A stretch of 64,000 nt of DNA, taken from contig JAWQFM010000014.1 of the NCBI GenBank assembly GCA_033442325.1, positions 328,589 through 392,588 on the forward strand, given 5' to 3'. Shown here one piece after another: positions 48,106 to 56,833 of this stretch. Source of the DNA: Salpingoeca rosetta (lineage: Eukaryota; Protista; Choanoflagellata). The translations under genes were made by a program, and so were the position numbers. Under the pieces are notes generated by a model. The model worked only from the letters and a program-made list of their open reading frames with translations, was not told the origin of the DNA and made no database searches. Positions within the stretch are counted from its first letter, which is position 1. Every line of letters begins with the position of its first letter.

Positions 48106-51100
48106 ATGACGTGTGCCGCCATCGTCGCCGCGTTGGTGGTGCTGTGCTGCGCATGCATGCCAAGCGCTGCTCTGAATCCTTCGCCCACCACCACAGCGGC
48201 ACTCGGCAGGCCCATCATCAGCACCAGCACATGTGGCTCGCCAGCAGACACTTACTGCTACTCAGAGGCTAGCCAGTGCTTCACCTGCAACGCCACCTGC
48301 CCCTTTCCATCTGCAGATGCACTGCAGTCGCCCATCGAGGGCCTCCTCCCTCAGGTAGGTGTGTGCGTGTGCGTGTGCGTGTGCGTGTGCGTGTGCGTGT
48401 GCGTGTGCGTGTGCGTGTGCGTGTGCATGCGTGCGTGTATGCGTGCGTGTGCGTGCGCGTGCGATGGTGTTGGCATCCATTCTGCATCTGTGCATGCGTT
48501 TTGCATGGCTTGCATTTTCTCATGCGTGCTTGCTGTGTTGGTTCCACCCCCCCCCCAAACCCACCCCCACACACACAGCCGGAGTGCGGGTGCCCGGCAT
48601 CGTATCCGGTGCCTGTGGACCTGGATTCCTGCTGCGAGACGGCAGCTGCACAGTCGTGCGTCCGCCGCATCAATACTGAAGCCCACCCGCCACAGTTTGC
48701 TGTCGACGCCGATGAGGGCACATACTTTCAGTCGGAGCAGAACGCTGCGCGCGTGAACGTCACGCTTGACTTGCTTCTTCCCTATGAGGTCACCACCATC
48801 ACCGTCACCTTTAGCGAGCGCGTACCATACGCCTTTGCCATCCTCAAGTCAAACGATGCGCAAACCTGGGAGCCTTTCCAGGTAGGAGCATGTGTGTGCG
48901 TGTTGTGTGTTCGGGCGCGTTGTGTGTTCGTGCGTGTTGTGTGTTCGTGCGCGTTCAGGTGTGTCCTGTGCATACATGTGGTTGGTGCATCGAGCATCAC
49001 ATGTGCCACGTTTGTTTGAGCTTGTTGGATTTCTCATCAGTGCCTGCACCACATCCACCTTTGTAGTTTTTCACGCGCGACTGCGAGGAGTTTTACGGCA
49101 TCGCTCCCGACCAGTGCGTCTTAACCACACACCTTGTGTTCCTTCCTGTGTACACACACACAGACACACAGACACACAGACACACACACACACACGCACC
49201 CGAATGCGGCGTTATGAGCCTCATTCCAATGCCTAACCCTTGGTTGTTATTGTGCATGCTTGCTTCTGGCAGGCAACTGACAGAGCCCGACCAAGTCATC
49301 TGCGACACAACTAAGACGAGCGTGCGTAACGATGAAATCTCACTGCGCACCCTCACCGCCGCCCGCATTCAGCTCGGTACGCCCTCAAGTGGTTGTCACA
49401 TGCGTTGATGATCATCCTGTGTCTTGCTTCCGTACTAGTGTTCTTCAATTCATCCCACAGCTGCAATAACCGTCCCTTCCCCCTTCCTCCTCTTCTCTAC
49501 ACCACCACCACCATCACCACCACCATCATGCAGCCGGCGGGTCGTATGCGGCGTCAGACGTGCTGCACGACTTTGTGCACACGCGCTTCATCCGCGTTGC
49601 CTTTGCGCAGTACTATGACGAGACCACCGCTGTGGACGACTTTGGTGTTCCCCTCGACCACGAGCCGTTCTACACGGTCACCAACATCCAGGTGGAGGGC
49701 CGGTGCGGCTGCCACGGCCACGCCGCGTCCTGCTCCGTTGACGTCGACAGCGCCGCATGTGCATGCGAGCACAACACGGGTGGTCCTGCGTGTGGCGAGT
49801 GCTTGCCGCTCTTCAACGCTAAGCCTTTTGCCCGCGGTATCTCCGACGATGAGCCAAACGTTTGCGTACGTCAGAGTACACACACACACACACACACACA
49901 CACACACACACACACACACACACACACACACACACACACACACACACACACACACACACACACACACACACACACACACAGTGTCTCGTGTCATGTAACG
50001 CAAGCACACACGCATGCTGGCGTTGGGTGTTGTGCCACTTGCGTGTTCACTTTGTTCCACAATTGCTGCCTGCCGTTGGGCATTGTTCTTTTCGCTCTCC
50101 TGACTGTCCATCTCTGCTTGTCGCTGTCTGCATCATTCAACGTCCATGAATGCAGGTTGCGTGCGACTGCAACGAGCACGCGCTCAGCTGCCACTATAAC
50201 GCTTCACTCGATGCGTTCCCCAATGACCGCACCCGCGGCGACGGTGGCGTCTGTGATAGCTGCATGCACAACACAGTGAGTTGCGCAGGCAGACCGTGAA
50301 CGTGGCATTGTCTGCACGTACATGTGCGTGTGTGTCGTGTGGTTGGTTGTATCTTATGTGTGTCGTGTGTTGTGTGTCGTGTGGTTGTATCTTGTGTGCG
50401 AGTTGTGTGTGTACATGTGCTTGAAGTGCACGAGAGCTTGCGTGCGTGCATGTGTGCGCTTCGAATCCAAGCGTGCCCTCACCCCATGCATTCGCCCCCT
50501 TCCTCCTCCTTTGCTGCTCCATCGCACCGCCAGGCTGGAATCCACTGCGAGACGTGTGCACCGGGCTATTACGAGAACCCAGCCGTACCCCGCAACCATG
50601 TGTGAGTATCACCATGCGTTTGATTGACAACGTGTTCCGAGTTATATGGTGATGGTTCAGTGAATGTGCGTCTCGTTCAACGCCCACCTGCCCAACACAC
50701 ACACACACACACACACACACACACACACACACACACATGCACACATGCACACATACACACACATGCTCGCGCGCACACACACATATGCACACACACACAC
50801 ATGGGCACCCGTCGCCTAACGAACAAGTGCCTTATTTCTTGATATGTGTCTCGCTGTCAGGAATGCGTGCATCCCGTGCGAGTGCAATGCAGCCGGATCA
50901 GAGAGCAGCACATGCAATCCCAAGACAGGCGCGTGTGAATGCAAGGCCAACGTGATGGGTGACCTGTGCGACATGTGCAAGCCCTCGTTCTACGATCTCT
51001 CCCTTGCACACGACGAGGGGTGTGAGAGCTGCGACTGCGTTGTGTTTGGCACGATTGAGGGTAGCAGGGACTGCGACGCCACGACGGGCCAGTGCGAGTG

Positions 51101-54100: not shown

Positions 54101-56833
54101 TGCGGCGCCTGCGCCAGTGCCGAGCTTGACGGCACATGTGTCGACACGTGCCCGCTCACCCACTACCGCGACGAGGCTGGCCTGTGCCGCCGCTGCAATG
54201 CAGAGTGCGCATCTGTCAATGGAACGCGCGCGTGCACGGGCCCTGGCGCCGATGCCTGCCTTGCGTGTGCGCACGTGAAGCGCGGGCGCGAGTGTGTGCG
54301 GTCATGCCTGACGCGGGAGGTTGCCGTGGATGGCGTGTGCCGCGGCTGCCATGCGCAGTGCAGCAGCGATGGTTGCTTTGGCTTGGAGGCCACGGAGTGC
54401 CTCACCTGCCGCAACTTTGAATTTGGCGGCGAGTGCGTTGCCGCGTGCGACGCGGACACGACATACACCTCCACAGCCACGGCCGAGTGCCTGCCGTGCC
54501 ATCGCGAGTGCAGCCTGCGCGCGGGCTCGGGCGGCTGCCCCGCGGGCACCAGCGCCGACGACTGCGTGGTGTGCGCGCACGTGCGTGACAACGGGCGGTG
54601 CGAGGCCGAGTGCTCGACCGGGACATACGCAGACGAGGCAGACACGGAAACGGCGCTTGGTGGCGTGTGCAAGGCGTGCCATCCAAGCTGCGATCCCCTT
54701 CGCGGCTGCACTGGGGGCCGCGCAGACGAGTGCAACGAGTGCGCGCACGTGTCCTACCAGGGCGTTTGCCGCACGGCGTGCCCAGACCTCACTTACCTCG
54801 GCAGTGGCAGCGAGTGCCTGGACTGCGATGCAAACTGCCTGCTTGGCTGCACGGGCCCGGGCGCGGACCAGTGCGTGCGCTCCAGCAACGTGCTTGACTC
54901 GAGCGCGGAGGCGCTTGGCTGCAGAACGTTTGTGGACATCCTCGCCAACGGCGTCGTCATGTGCGTGGCAGAGTGCCCCATCACGAAGTACGCCGACAGC
55001 AACGGGGTGTGCCGGGCGTGCAGCACGCTGTGCCCGCTGGAGTATGGCTGCACGGGGCCGACCCTCGCCGATTGCAACAGCTGCCCCGCCACGCAGTACC
55101 TTGCTCCCGACCGCACCTGTGCTGATTGTAGCGCGTCGTGCTCCACAGACCTCGACCTTGCTGGCTGTACCGGCCCAGAGCCGAAGCAGTGCAACGTGTG
55201 TGCGGGCGCGCGCTACAGCGGCGGGTGCGTGGACGACTGCTCTGCGCTGACAGATGTGGATGTGGGCCTGTACTTTGGCGTGGACGACACGTCTGTTCCC
55301 GACGAGGTGCAGTGTGTTCCCTGCCACGAGCAGTGCGTTGCTGGCGGCTGCACGGGGGCGGGCCCAGACCAGTGCCTCTTTGGCTGCAAGAACTTCGCCC
55401 AAGTGGACGGCGCCACCGGCGACGTGACCTGCGTCGAAACGTGTGGCGCAAACACGTTTGTCGCAGACACGCCCGTCCCGCGCACGTGCGTGCCCTGCCA
55501 CTCGCGGTGCCGTGGCGGCTGCCGTGACGAGACGCCGTTCACCTGCGTGGAGTGCGCTCGCTTCCGCACGGAGGAGGGCGAGTGCGTGGACGTGTGCCCG
55601 CCAGGGTGGGTGCCTGGCACGGACGGCGTTTGCCGCTGCCCGACCGACCGGTCGTACACCAACACCACCAGCGGCCAGTGCCTGCCATGCAGCGTGCTGT
55701 GCTCCGCTGGGTGCACGGGCCCTCTTCCTTCTCAGTGCAAGGGCGGCAGTGATGGCTGCACGTTTGCCGAGCACAACGGCGTGTGCGTGGCGGATTGCCC
55801 CACCGGGATGGTGCGGCAGAACAGCGTGTGCGTGTGCAAGTTCAACCACATTACCGTGACAGATCCCGCAGACGGGTGCATGCCGTGCGACGACCAGTGT
55901 GCGGACGGGTGCACGGGCCCCACGGCCTCCGACTGCCTGCGCTGCCGCAACTACCGCTCCGGGGAGGTCTGTGTCGAGGAGTGCGCGGCAGATGAGCAGC
56001 CAGACGCAGACAGGTTCTGTGCCCCCTGTCATCCGGAATGTGCTGGTGGCTGCATTGCCCCTGGCGATGCCCTGCAGTGTGTGTCGTGCCGGGCGTACAA
56101 GGATGCCGGGGAGTGCGTGAGCAACTGCCCCTCCGAGCGCTTCTTCGTGACGCAGAGCGGCGTGTGTGTTGAGGAGTGTCCAAGCGACACGCCCTTCTAC
56201 AACGACACGCGCCCACTCGGCGAGGCAGACCCAGCCGCCCCGCAGCTGTGCGTGGATGCGTGCGCTGCGCTTGGCGCGTTGCGCAACCTCGTCAACAAGG
56301 ACGTGCCGCAGCGGTGCTCAACACAGGCGCAGCTGGACGTTGATTTCGCCAGCGCCTCTGGCTCGAGCGCAACCAAACTCACGCAGACGTCACTCACGGT
56401 CATTGTTGCAGCTGGTGTGCTGGTGCTTGTGATTGTCGTCGCGGTCGTGCTTGTGCTGCGGCGGCGTCGGCGTGAGAGCAGTGCGGCGTTTGCCACTCCC
56501 GGTGGGAAAGTGACGGCCCTCAACCCGGGAGCGAAGGTGTCGCCCACGCGCACAAAACTCAACGCACTCTATGAACCATCGCCACGACGCCCCGGACACC
56601 ACAGCGGCGGCGGCGGTGGTGGTGATGTGTCGTTCGATGGGGGCCCGAGATATGATGTCGCAAACATCTCTGGCACCGACAGCAGCATGTACATGGACCC
56701 CATGTCGCTGAACGACACGGCGGATCACATGGACGGGTATCTTGAGGTGCGGCCGCAGAACCCGTACTCGATGAGCGACCAGGCGCTCTTTGAACCGCCC
56801 ATCAACTCGGCAGTGCAAAGCACGCGCATGTGA
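48106..56833 (+). CDS. Large type I membrane protein: signal peptide, laminin N-terminal domain, 4 laminin-type EGF domains, ~25 furin-like Cys-rich repeats, TM, short Tyr-motif cytoplasmic tail
   Basis: STCGSPADTYC; HPPQFAVD...TYFQSE...VNVTLDL...ILKSNDAQTWEPFQ; VEGRCGCHGHA...CEHNTGGPACGECLPLFN; recurring CxxCHxxCxxxCxGP units; TM VIVAAGVLVLVIVVAVVLVL followed by RRRRR. Confidence 0.88.

Follow-up and report, generated by a model that had tools for sequence, protein, structure and literature searches.

The window analysed here, a 64,000-nucleotide stretch of Salpingoeca rosetta DNA, carries at positions 48106-56833 of the forward strand a genuine, expressed gene whose annotation already existed before this analysis. 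Its 11 exons lie at 48106-48354, 48579-48881, 49067-49113, 49273-49376, 49534-49865, 50156-50275, 50534-50601, 50861-51134, 51371-51772, 52055-52710 and 53101-56833, and their coding sum of 6288 nt corresponds to 2095 amino acids plus a stop codon (ATG at 48106, stop at 56831-56833). Every intron is of the GT-AG type, and the translation of each exon was recovered, in the same order, in the annotated 2095-residue protein. The product is XP_004993731.1 (EGD73449.1, F2UAN3), which NCBI and UniProt name 'laminin alpha 5 chain', a label that is an automatic misnomer. We refer to it as the LN-furin protein. Its features are as follows.

48106..56833, + strand: whole coding region, 11 exons (GT-AG model, exon translations matched to the annotated protein)
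48106..48171, + strand: signal peptide, ~aa 1-22 (hydrophobic core aa 5-23, Kyte-Doolittle window score 2.44)
48223..49703, + strand: LN domain, ~aa 40-291, exons 1-5 (Pfam, PDB sequence search, AF2/Foldseek)
49704..51415, + strand: four LE modules, ~aa 292-514, exons 5-9 (Pfam and Cys pattern)
51134..52055, + strand: splice joints from exon 8 (last LE) to exons 9 and 10 (first furin), 51134 to 51371 and 51772 to 52055 (RNA)
51416..56290, + strand: stalk of 25 furin-type (GF_recep_IV / Furin-like) Cys-rich repeats, aa 515-~1915, exons 9-11
56390..56458, + strand: single TM helix, aa 1949-1971, then an RRRRR stop-transfer (hydropathy 3.55)
56459..56830, + strand: cytoplasmic tail, 124 aa (translation)
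56570, + strand: NALY, Tyr codon start of the LYEP tyrosine (translation)
56651, + strand: RYDV, Tyr codon (translation)
56690, + strand: MYMDP, Tyr codon (translation)
56738, + strand: GYLEV, Tyr codon (translation)
56765, + strand: NPYSMSDQALF, Tyr codon (translation)
56819, + strand: start of STRM in the C-terminal QSTRM (translation)

An earlier reading of this DNA, made from the sequence only, had made its case depend on the LamNT exons being spliced to those of the furin repeats. The last LE exon is indeed joined to the furin exons, since both joints (51134 to 51371 and 51772 to 52055) are present in raw RNA reads with GT..AG borders and recur in two RNA-like contigs of 6627 nt and 6663 nt, a length consistent with a full mRNA of the gene. 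The RNA-read placement covers the end of exon 7 to the start of exon 11, to both of which the loose ends of the RNA alignments match; the region of exons 1-6 contains microsatellites. Orthologous full-length transcripts carry the LN domain and the furin repeats within a single ORF.

Head, stalk and membrane helix

The sequence-only reading had listed a signal peptide, a LamNT domain with four LE domains, ~25 furin-like repeats and one TM segment, and each of these elements was recovered. Hydropathy analysis places a hydrophobic N-terminus at aa 5-23. Pfam scored Laminin_N at 49.7 bits in exon 2 alone, above the cut-off of 25.9, and at 23 bits in exon 1, and PF00055 is in the precomputed Pfam list of XP_004993731.1. 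The LN region includes a pre-LN segment with a PQPECGCPASYP signature, and a linker of about 45 residues (aa 63-109) that is of low confidence in the AF2 model. A phmmer search of PDB sequences retrieved laminin beta1 LN-LE1-4 (E 9.5e-66) and netrin-1 (E 2e-62). The AF2 model has a pLDDT of 83.8, exceeding 90 across most of aa 130-560, and in Foldseek it matched netrin-1 LN-LE3 (4.8e-41) and laminin beta1 LN-LE1-4 (2.5e-39). The predicted fold is that of an LN jelly roll packed on tandem LE modules. The latter were matched as EGF_laminin / EGF_LMN_ATRN in exons 5, 6, 7 and 8, and their number, four, is given by the invariant Cys pattern in the alignment.

Both GF_recep_IV and Furin-like were matched in exons 9 and 10, and exon 11 gave E values of 3.2e-92 for GF_recep_IV (12 stretches) and 2.3e-53 for Furin-like. 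From aa 515 to 1825 the CxxCxxxC start of a repeat occurs 25 times, and aa 560-1950 contain 199 Cys, corresponding to ~8 per repeat. The one TM helix lies at aa 1949-1971 by hydropathy. A Pfam scan of all 11 exons matched solely Laminin_N, F5/8-type C-like, LE and furin-type families. In the same protein Pfam matched no kinase or other enzyme domain, no Laminin_G_3 (LamGL), fn3, Laminin_G or NTR domain, and neither an EMI domain nor LDL-receptor repeats. PF06008, PF06009, PF00052 and PF00054 are absent from the precomputed Pfam list of XP_004993731.1, and PF07714, PF00069 and PF01030 from that list and those of the choanoflagellate relatives, which are likewise without kinase, coiled coil, LG, FN3 or NTR domains. 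Pfam and topology agree with the earlier description in showing a type I membrane protein that lacks a kinase and carries its LN-LE head on a long furin stalk.

These data bear on whether the gene encodes a degenerate receptor tyrosine kinase (RTK), its kinase exon having been lost or missed, or a true laminin chain, either of which we regard as extremely improbable. EGFR and insulin-receptor ectodomains typically contain furin-type repeats, animal EGFRs are weak matches (E 1e-20 to 1e-14), and the database name is that of a laminin. However, the ORF closes at a stop codon past which the RNA contigs extend only ~51-53 nt, leaving no room for a kinase exon, and no choanoflagellate relative carries PF07714 or PF00069; nor did Pfam find Recep_L, the laminin coiled coil (Laminin_I/II), L4/LF or LG in any exon. 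With no kinase, coiled-coil or LG domain, an RTK or laminin identity is refuted as far as sequence allows.

Family range and LN phylogeny

The LN-furin family is choanoflagellate-wide, with members of the same architecture in both Craspedida (Microstomoeca roanoka, Salpingoeca infusionum, Monosiga brevicollis, Choanoeca perplexa, S. urceolata and Barroeca monosierra) and Acanthoecida (Stephanoeca diplocostata and Savillea parva). Members fall into two size classes, long with about 25 repeats and short with about 12, and the stalk size class is conserved. In eight other species, full-length transcripts close with a PDZ-ligand tail like that of the S. rosetta gene, a further point against the loss of a kinase exon. 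LN domains in choanoflagellates are already in the literature (PMC3308698, PMC3516229, PMC3002383). The domain combination had been put forward as one not known from animals, and this stands insofar as no animal protein with both Laminin_N and furin-type repeats was among the best 120 matches listed per word-based search; the overall plan, however, is that of usherin, with the furin stalk and the tail grammar as the departures from it.

The head had also been described as a basement-membrane-type domain, which is misleading, as its LN domain leans towards the usherin type rather than the laminin type. Outside the family, LN-only scores were best for usherins (120 and 102 bits), with laminins at 99 bits or less. 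In an unrooted LN tree built without netrins and gamma chains, the family grouped with usherin apart from the laminins with support of 93/90, although AU tests rejected neither placement of the family LN with laminin alpha (p 0.052) nor with beta-like chains (p 0.20). In the comparison of the LamNT domain that had been proposed, covered here for usherin and laminins, the tree leans towards usherin, short of statistical security. The pre-LN signature [QS]P[EQN]CxC...[YH]P is shared by 3/3 usherins and by every one of the seven aligned long-class sequences whose N-terminus is included; its strict form is found in XP_004993731.1, in 3/3 usherins and in an S. rosetta usherin-like gene, and in 0/111 laminins.

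This usherin-like gene (PTSG_02226 by its domain list) is separate from the LN-furin gene and has LamGL, FN3 repeats and a DTWL end; LamGL is also present in the Oopsacas usherin-like protein. Because S. rosetta has such a gene, the LN-furin gene is a paralogue-like furin-stalk variant and not the usherin orthologue.

The cytoplasmic tail and its proposed role

All five tyrosine motifs noticed in the sequence-only reading (LYEP, RYDV, MYMDP, GYLEV and NPYS) and its STRM end lie in the 124-residue tail, which contains exactly five tyrosines (Y2009, Y2036, Y2049, Y2065 and Y2074). That reading had made its case depend on conservation of the motifs, which were counted in 28 related choanoflagellate tails and are largely kept in the orthologues, foremost the PDZ ligand, GY[LM][ED]V and NPYSM. 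A class I PDZ ligand ends 26 of the 28 tails, mostly as S/T-T-H/R-L/M/V, with the form [STD]T[HRQK][LMVI] in 20. A membrane-proximal NxxY/F, kept more widely across the family than any other Tyr motif, occurs in 20/28, xY[LMI]x[VI] in 15/28, and NPYSM and D.ALF in 11-12/28. YDV and YMDP are kept only among close craspedid orthologues, and what acanthoecid tails retain is chiefly NPxF/Y together with the PDZ ligand. The sequence between the motifs is not alignable among the 28 tails, and conservation of the motifs against this divergent background argues for their being functional short linear motifs.

A tail grammar of FxNPxY, NPxY..ALF and GYLDV is also found on a different ectodomain encoded 26 kb downstream, and the S. 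rosetta usherin-like gene has GYLQI with its DTWL end. Both resemblances point to cytoplasmic readers that these tails may share.

We propose that the LN-furin protein is probably a non-catalytic type I cell-surface protein for adhesion or ligand sensing, with a tail of docking motifs. From the sequence we infer its surface location, a ligand for the head, phosphorylation of the tail and PDZ, SH2 and PTB partners. The LN and four-LE head would likely serve as a binding or self-association module, which a rigid, disulphide-rich rod of 25 repeats may hold, at a rough estimate, tens of nanometres off the membrane. The short, disordered and enzyme-less tail would then present a row of conserved short linear motifs for docking. 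Closest to the membrane is an NxxY of the kind that PTB domains or endocytic adaptors would read, two to four Tyr motifs (xY[LM][ED]V being the best kept) could serve as SH2 sites once phosphorylated or as YxxPhi sorting signals, and the NPYSMSDxALF box is a further putative docking motif. The literature search brought up no S. rosetta phosphoproteome with this protein among its entries. The C-terminal class I PDZ ligand is predicted to tether the protein to a PDZ scaffold.

As judged by their sequence, NxxY and YLEV would be equally good as PTB or endocytic sorting signals as for SH2 docking, and conservation of the Tyr motifs does not separate SH2 docking from trafficking by AP-2 or PTB adaptors. 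It is conceivable, though unlikely, that the protein is an endocytic or engulfment-type receptor that internalises a captured ligand, for example bacterial prey or matrix material, with tail motifs that are trafficking signals and not SH2 sites. NxxY/FxNPxY would recruit PTB adaptors like GULP/CED-6, Dab or Numb, and YLEV would be a YxxPhi AP-2 signal, on the model of CED-1/Draper/MEGF10 and LRP-type receptors. The widest-kept Tyr motif, N-x-x-Y/F, often takes the canonical form NPxY/F preceded by an aromatic residue (LFYNPAY, YVNPEY, NPTF), and YLEV and YMEV match YxxPhi. Choanoflagellates are phagotrophs, and CED-1/Draper/MEGF10 are alike in having a long EGF-type Cys-rich ectodomain, one TM segment and a tail with NPxY and YxxL. 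However, the LN-furin protein has neither the EMI domain nor the LDL-receptor repeats of such receptors, and trafficking alone leaves the strict conservation of the PDZ ligand and of NPYSMSDxALF unexplained. Endocytosis is compatible with the docking-receptor explanation, and the two are not mutually exclusive.

The PDZ ligand and the usherin-leaning head raise the further prospect, which we consider quite unlikely, of a structural link protein of the collar or flagellum, comparable to usherin in the USH2 ankle-link/periciliary complex. In this reading the LN-LE heads would pair with one another, or with some other partner, to bridge neighbouring microvilli or the space from collar to flagellum, with a whirlin- or harmonin-like PDZ scaffold anchoring the tail and the Tyr motifs playing a secondary part. 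Usherin is a stereocilium and periciliary (ankle-link) membrane protein, and in human usherin and ADGRV1 the C-terminus is DTHL, which the commonest family end, S/T-T-H-[LMV], resembles. The shared pre-LN signature and the plan of LN-LE head, long repeat rod, TM segment and class I PDZ ligand are as in usherin, and the occurrence of stalks in two conserved lengths suggests that they act as spacers. Usherin is a TM protein whose PDZ-binding motif binds whirlin (PMC8417766), and sponge choanocytes show enrichment of both usherin and VLGR1 (PMC4942974). However, the separate S. rosetta usherin-like gene is a more natural candidate for such a link, and the placement of the family LN with usherin is statistically insecure by the AU tests.

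Comparison with known systems

With the features of an adhesion or sensing protein with a docking tail, as preferred here, the LN-furin protein can be set beside several known families. Its LN-LE head is homologous to, and has the same predicted fold as, those of laminins and netrins. Unlike laminins, it is membrane-anchored and has no coiled coil, L4/LF or LG, and hence cannot form a laminin heterotrimer. Netrins are secreted and consist of LN, 3 LE and NTR; the LN-furin protein, with its furin stalk and TM helix and no NTR domain, is not a netrin.

The best stalk matches listed outside choanoflagellates were to the long Cys-rich regions of PCSK5 (PC5/6), followed by EGFRs. PCSK5 and the EGFR/insulin-receptor RTKs share GF_recep_IV and Furin-like repeats with the stalk, but the LN-furin protein has no subtilase, receptor L domains or kinase, and its 25 uninterrupted repeats form a stalk for an LN head.

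By analogy, CED-1/Draper/MEGF10, LRP1 and integrin beta resemble it in spanning the membrane once, in having a Cys-rich ectodomain of EGF type, in lacking an enzyme, and in a short tail where N-x-x-Y close to the membrane is accompanied by more Tyr motifs. They differ in that the LN-furin protein lacks EMI, LDL-A and integrin domains and shows no detectable homology to them in sequence, and in that they are not known to carry the PDZ ligand and NPYSMSDxALF box of its tail.

Among animal proteins, usherin comes closest in overall logic and, from the LN comparisons, probably also in LN type. Both have a signal peptide, LN with tandem LE modules, a very long repeat rod, one TM segment and a short tail that has no enzyme and closes with a class I PDZ ligand (predicted for the STRM of the LN-furin protein). 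In usherin, however, LamGL lies N-terminal to LN, as it does in the S. rosetta usherin-like gene, at the site where the LN-furin protein has its low-confidence linker; there are 10 LE modules versus 4; and the stalk is built of FN3 and LamG domains in place of furin-type repeats, while NxxY, GYLEV and NPYSMSDxALF belong to the LN-furin tail.

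Gene model and transcript

Translation of window 47900–56900, within the stretch C14:328589–392588 of the 55-Mb S. rosetta assembly, gave a series of ten short in-frame blocks that ends in one long open frame, with microsatellite-rich introns in between. A GT-AG search yielded one consistent 11-exon model (window 48106–56833, + strand) with GT-AG borders at all introns and a total exon length of 6288 nt. Queried with the terminal exon, a protein word search returned P0001, the annotated 2095-aa product (XP_004993731.1 / EGD73449.1 / F2UAN3), and an exon-by-exon check found all exon translations in this protein, in order. 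Its NCBI automatic name, ‘laminin alpha 5 chain’, is misleading. For the domain searches the exons were queried singly, and the stored protein P0001 served as the full-length query.

Public S. rosetta sequencing runs contain either ∼96% or ∼50% of the sampled words of window 48000–53400; since exons make up 53% of that interval, the ∼50% group fits spliced RNA. The joints 51134 to 51371 and 51772 to 52055 occur in raw RNA-seq reads (read sets X20 and X21) and in two contigs of 6627 nt (X4) and 6663 nt (X6), from different studies. The RNA evidence on joints covers window 50802–52863, where almost every read is first-mate-minus, a sign of plus-strand RNA in most stranded libraries; read depth is zero or close to zero across most of introns 8 and 9, and the loose ends of the RNA alignment correspond to the last part of exon 7 and the beginning of exon 11. 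Exon 8 begins at contig position 1509 (X4) or 1543 (X6), so that the 5′ part corresponds to exons 1–7 (1223 nt) plus a 5′ UTR of 285–319 nt, while the 3784 or 3786 nt lying 3′ of exon 10 correspond to exon 11 (3733 nt) plus ∼51–53 nt. From the joints, positions and lengths it follows that the exons encoding laminin-type EGF (LE) modules are spliced to the furin-repeat exons in a 6.6-kb mRNA, and that there is no space for another 3′ coding exon. For the joints among exons 1–7 the support comes from the annotated model, the lengths of the two contigs and one of the loose ends.

A 31-nt (GCTT)n-like stretch in intron 8 (window 51190–51220) has matches, with a single T>C difference at 51204, in a 184-nt contig of depth ∼2900 and in RNA reads of very high abundance. 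The flanks of these reads and of the contig do not match this locus, and the matches look like a repeat common to a highly expressed transcript elsewhere rather than intron expression. In many introns of the gene there are long microsatellites of GT/GC type right behind the donor, or runs of (AC)n or (CACT)n ahead of the acceptor, such as (AC)51 in intron 5; the microsatellite-bearing parts are 48361–48461, 49878–49980, 50695–50801, 51800–51885 and 52864–53063. Judged by motifs read in ORF translations, the downstream neighbours appear to be of housekeeping type and unrelated to the gene:

Window 58394–59044, − strand: spermidine-synthase-like gene
Window 59790–61190, + strand: tyrosyl-tRNA-synthetase-like gene

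Protein architecture and choanoflagellate family

Pfam searches exon by exon placed Laminin_N (the laminin N-terminal domain, LN) in exons 1–2, together with weaker F5/8-type-C matches that are usual for the LN jelly roll, EGF_laminin / EGF_LMN_ATRN in exons 5–8, and GF_recep_IV and Furin-like in exons 9–11 (3e-92 and 2e-53 for the last exon). The head (aa 1–560) matches solved LN-LE fragments of laminin beta1 (9.5e-66) and netrin-1 (2e-62). An AlphaFold model of the head, built on a 22-sequence alignment, has a mean pLDDT of 83.8 and exceeds 90 over most of aa 130–560, the sole long low-confidence segment past the signal peptide being aa 63–109; its top Foldseek matches are netrin-1 LN-LE3 and laminin beta1 LN-LE1-4 (E∼1e-40). 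Four LE modules (aa 292–514) are followed by a stalk with 25 CxxCxxxC repeat starts between aa 515 and 1825, and 199 cysteines lie in aa 560–1950. One transmembrane segment (aa 1949–1971) is followed by RRRRR and a 124-aa tail, which contains exactly five tyrosines, in LYEP, RYDV, MYMDP, GYLEV and NPYS, and has the C-terminus STRM. What had been read from the nucleotide sequence, an LN domain with four LE modules, ∼25 furin repeats, one transmembrane segment and a five-tyrosine tail ending in STRM, was correct in every item, from gene model and Pfam domains to the cysteine, transmembrane and tail counts.

A netrin was rejected for want of an NTR domain. That P0001 is a true laminin chain, as its database name implies, or a degenerate receptor tyrosine kinase is essentially refuted: it contains neither a coiled coil nor LG domains, the Pfam lists of its choanoflagellate relatives include no kinase, and the mRNA leaves no room for one. 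We consider it probable that P0001 is a type I receptor for adhesion or sensing that is itself non-catalytic. The head would bind a ligand or another LN head from the tip of a rigid disulphide-rich rod, and the tail would recruit PDZ, PTB and possibly SH2 proteins.

A search with stalk and tail found the same architecture, under EukProt labels, in Microstomoeca roanoka (54% identity), S. infusionum, Monosiga brevicollis (MONBRDRAFT_26825), Choanoeca perplexa, S. urceolata, Barroeca monosierra, Stephanoeca diplocostata and Savillea parva, and also in unlabelled environmental sequences. This LN-furin family spans both choanoflagellate orders, and it predates the craspedid–acanthoecid split. Its members fall into a long class (1960–2215 aa, ∼240–275 ectodomain cysteines) and a short class (∼1400–1460 aa) with roughly half the repeats. 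The S. rosetta short-class member, P0027 (XP_004995045.1, 941 aa), is likewise auto-named ‘laminin alpha 5 chain’ and is annotated with neither head nor signal peptide:

C10:729500–742401 (loci L010, L007 and L008), strand not given: genomic locus of P0027

With the heads of the Barroeca and related orthologues as queries, tblastn located collinear LN and LE exons ≤5 kb upstream of P0027 (L010 5271–10000) and adjoining a 774-N assembly gap; the P0027 gene model is therefore probably truncated. Flagging this paralogue and correcting the misleading name of P0001 are practical outcomes of the analysis.

Outside choanoflagellates the stalk matches EGFRs and the Cys-rich regions of PCSK5; matches to the head are laminins and usherins. 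Two word searches (stalk/tail and head) listed no animal protein among their matches with Laminin_N and furin-type repeats together, which suggests, from searches that were not exhaustive, that the architecture is absent from animals. An Atlas feature search returned generic LN-LE clusters only. The gene was already annotated, if misnamed, and LN domains were known in choanoflagellates; as far as we searched, the LN-furin family as such and its two size classes appear to be undescribed, as do the conserved tail grammar with a usherin-like PDZ ligand, the usherin-leaning LN domain, and coexistence with a full usherin-like gene.

Conserved motifs of the cytoplasmic tail

The 28 tails compared allow no whole-length alignment, yet they have conserved islands in common. 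In 26 of them the extreme C-terminus is a PDZ ligand of class I, [ST]-x-[LMVI], a pattern that chance alone would put at the end of a few per cent of proteins; 20 end in the narrower [STD]-T-[HRQK]-[LMVI] (QSTRM, QSTHM, ESTHL, HSTHV and others like them). A membrane-proximal N-x-x-Y/F, often NPxY/F with an aromatic residue upstream, is present in 20/28, x-Y-[LMI]-x-[VI] in 15/28 (GYLEV, SYMEV, GYLTV), and NPYSM followed by D-x-A-L-F in 11–12 of 28. RYDV and MYMDP are common only to close craspedid relatives. In large part, the tail motifs first noted in P0001 are conserved. Such islands are what one expects to see where short linear motifs are functional, and they show constraint rather than phosphorylation. 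No phosphoproteomic record for P0001 was found, the supplements of the p38 paper do not list it, and a full-text search on its accessions returned no paper naming it. Among the entries listed in the expression tables of Fairclough 2013 are the LN genes PTSG_02226, PTSG_11695 and PTSG_12970 and not this gene.

The earlier interpretation, a kinase-less receptor coupling a basement-membrane-type head directly to SH2 signalling, holds in part only. An endocytic or engulfment receptor is a rather unlikely alternative to the adhesion or sensing receptor proposed here.

Choanoflagellates are a reference point for cell-surface machinery that predates animals, and the LN-LE head is usually discussed as a basement-membrane module. 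This gene shows it already in place on a putative membrane-anchored receptor that lacks an enzyme domain and whose tail carries Tyr motifs and a conserved PDZ ligand. The gene offers a CRISPR-tractable target for the role of LN domains before laminin networks, and for the way in which choanoflagellates link their large pTyr/SH2/PDZ toolkit to the surface without receptor kinases. Supplementary tables (PMC4054682) list both SH2 and PDZ domains for PTSG_01722, a candidate reader of tails with Tyr motifs and a PDZ ligand; the same tables list cadherin, PTPase, FN3, furin repeats and Laminin_N together in PTSG_12970.

Relation to usherin

Usherin homologues have been mentioned in choanoflagellates (Özbek et al. 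2010, PMC3002383), LamNT has been listed among choanoflagellate domains without true laminins (Hynes 2012, PMC3308698), Monosiga LN-3EGF sequences have been included in an earlier study (Leclère and Rentzsch 2012, PMC3516229), and usherin orthologues have been reported in sponges, with VLGR1 that ‘is even present in choanoflagellates’ (Peña et al. 2016, PMC4942974). S. rosetta contains two further LN loci:

C3 ∼366,000–393,300 (loci L001, L004, L006 and L005; terminal exon L005:7933–9276), + strand: usherin-like gene
C2:1175588–1178701 (L003), strand not given: third LN locus, with a short LN match, a C-terminal LN part, LE modules and an internal run of N

The C3 gene looks like a canonical usherin-like gene, with LamGL, Laminin_N, five or more LE modules, VWA, many FN3 domains, galaxin-type repeats, one transmembrane segment and a tail of ∼330 aa that contains YFYENP and SGYLQIAPV and ends in EEDTWL, a class I PDZ ligand pattern. 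Its domains agree with those listed for PTSG_02226 in Fairclough 2013's tables, and L003 is possibly PTSG_11695, for which the tables list LN, LE, dockerin and legume-lectin signatures.

With LN alone as query, the best scores outside the family are to usherins (Oopsacas, 120 bits; Phyllobates, 102 bits), laminins reaching ≤99, and the usherin alignments begin ∼30 residues before the laminin ones. A maximum-likelihood tree of LN plus ∼3 LE (43 rows, LG+C20, unrooted) recovers the LN-furin family (98/94) and usherin (97/89) and joins the two against laminin alpha and beta-like chains (93/90). AU tests rejected neither family + alpha (p=0.052) nor family + beta-like (p=0.20). When exon pieces of L001 and L003 were added, long, poorly resolved branches resulted, L003 being broken by an assembly gap. 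Just ahead of LN, [QS]P[EQN]-C-x-C-...-[YH]-P is found in 7/7 aligned long-class members with an N-terminus and 3/3 usherins, and its strict form is present in P0001, the S. rosetta C3 gene and the three usherins and in 0/111 laminins. This signature supports the usherin link qualitatively, and the LN domain of P0001 appears usherin-leaning.

The same motif grammar is found in the tail of another receptor gene:

C14:418000–427000 (L011:7376–8092), ∼26–33 kb past the window end, + strand: tail of a different receptor gene

This tail contains FHNPPYEDP, GYDNVPG, GYDHVPG, NPTYDTALF, PPYDTL and HGYLDVV and has FxNPxY, NPxY..ALF and GYL[DE]V in common with that of P0001, while the C3 gene carries GYLQI and DTWL. 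Together these motifs suggest common cytoplasmic readers for several kinase-less receptors. It is quite unlikely, in our estimate, that one kinase-independent grammar (FxNxxY, NP(x)Y..ALF, GY[LM][DE]V and a terminal S/T-T-H/R-Phi PDZ ligand) serves unrelated choanoflagellate ectodomains (LN-furin, usherin-like and CTLD-furin-SEA) through one common scaffold, for instance a whirlin/harmonin-like PDZ protein or PTSG_01722, with LN-furin and usherin derived from one pre-animal LN-headed collar/flagellum link receptor. Were it true, the USH2-type link complex would be older than animals and the LN-furin family its choanoflagellate-specific furin-stalk branch. That P0001 itself is a usherin-like collar or flagellar link is decidedly improbable as an alternative to the adhesion or sensing receptor.

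P0001 is not a usherin orthologue, because a separate usherin-like gene, with which the LN-furin receptor coexists, lies on C3 of S. rosetta. P0001 appears to be a furin-stalk relative that lacks LamGL, with a disordered linker in its model at exactly the site where usherin and the C3 gene carry that domain.
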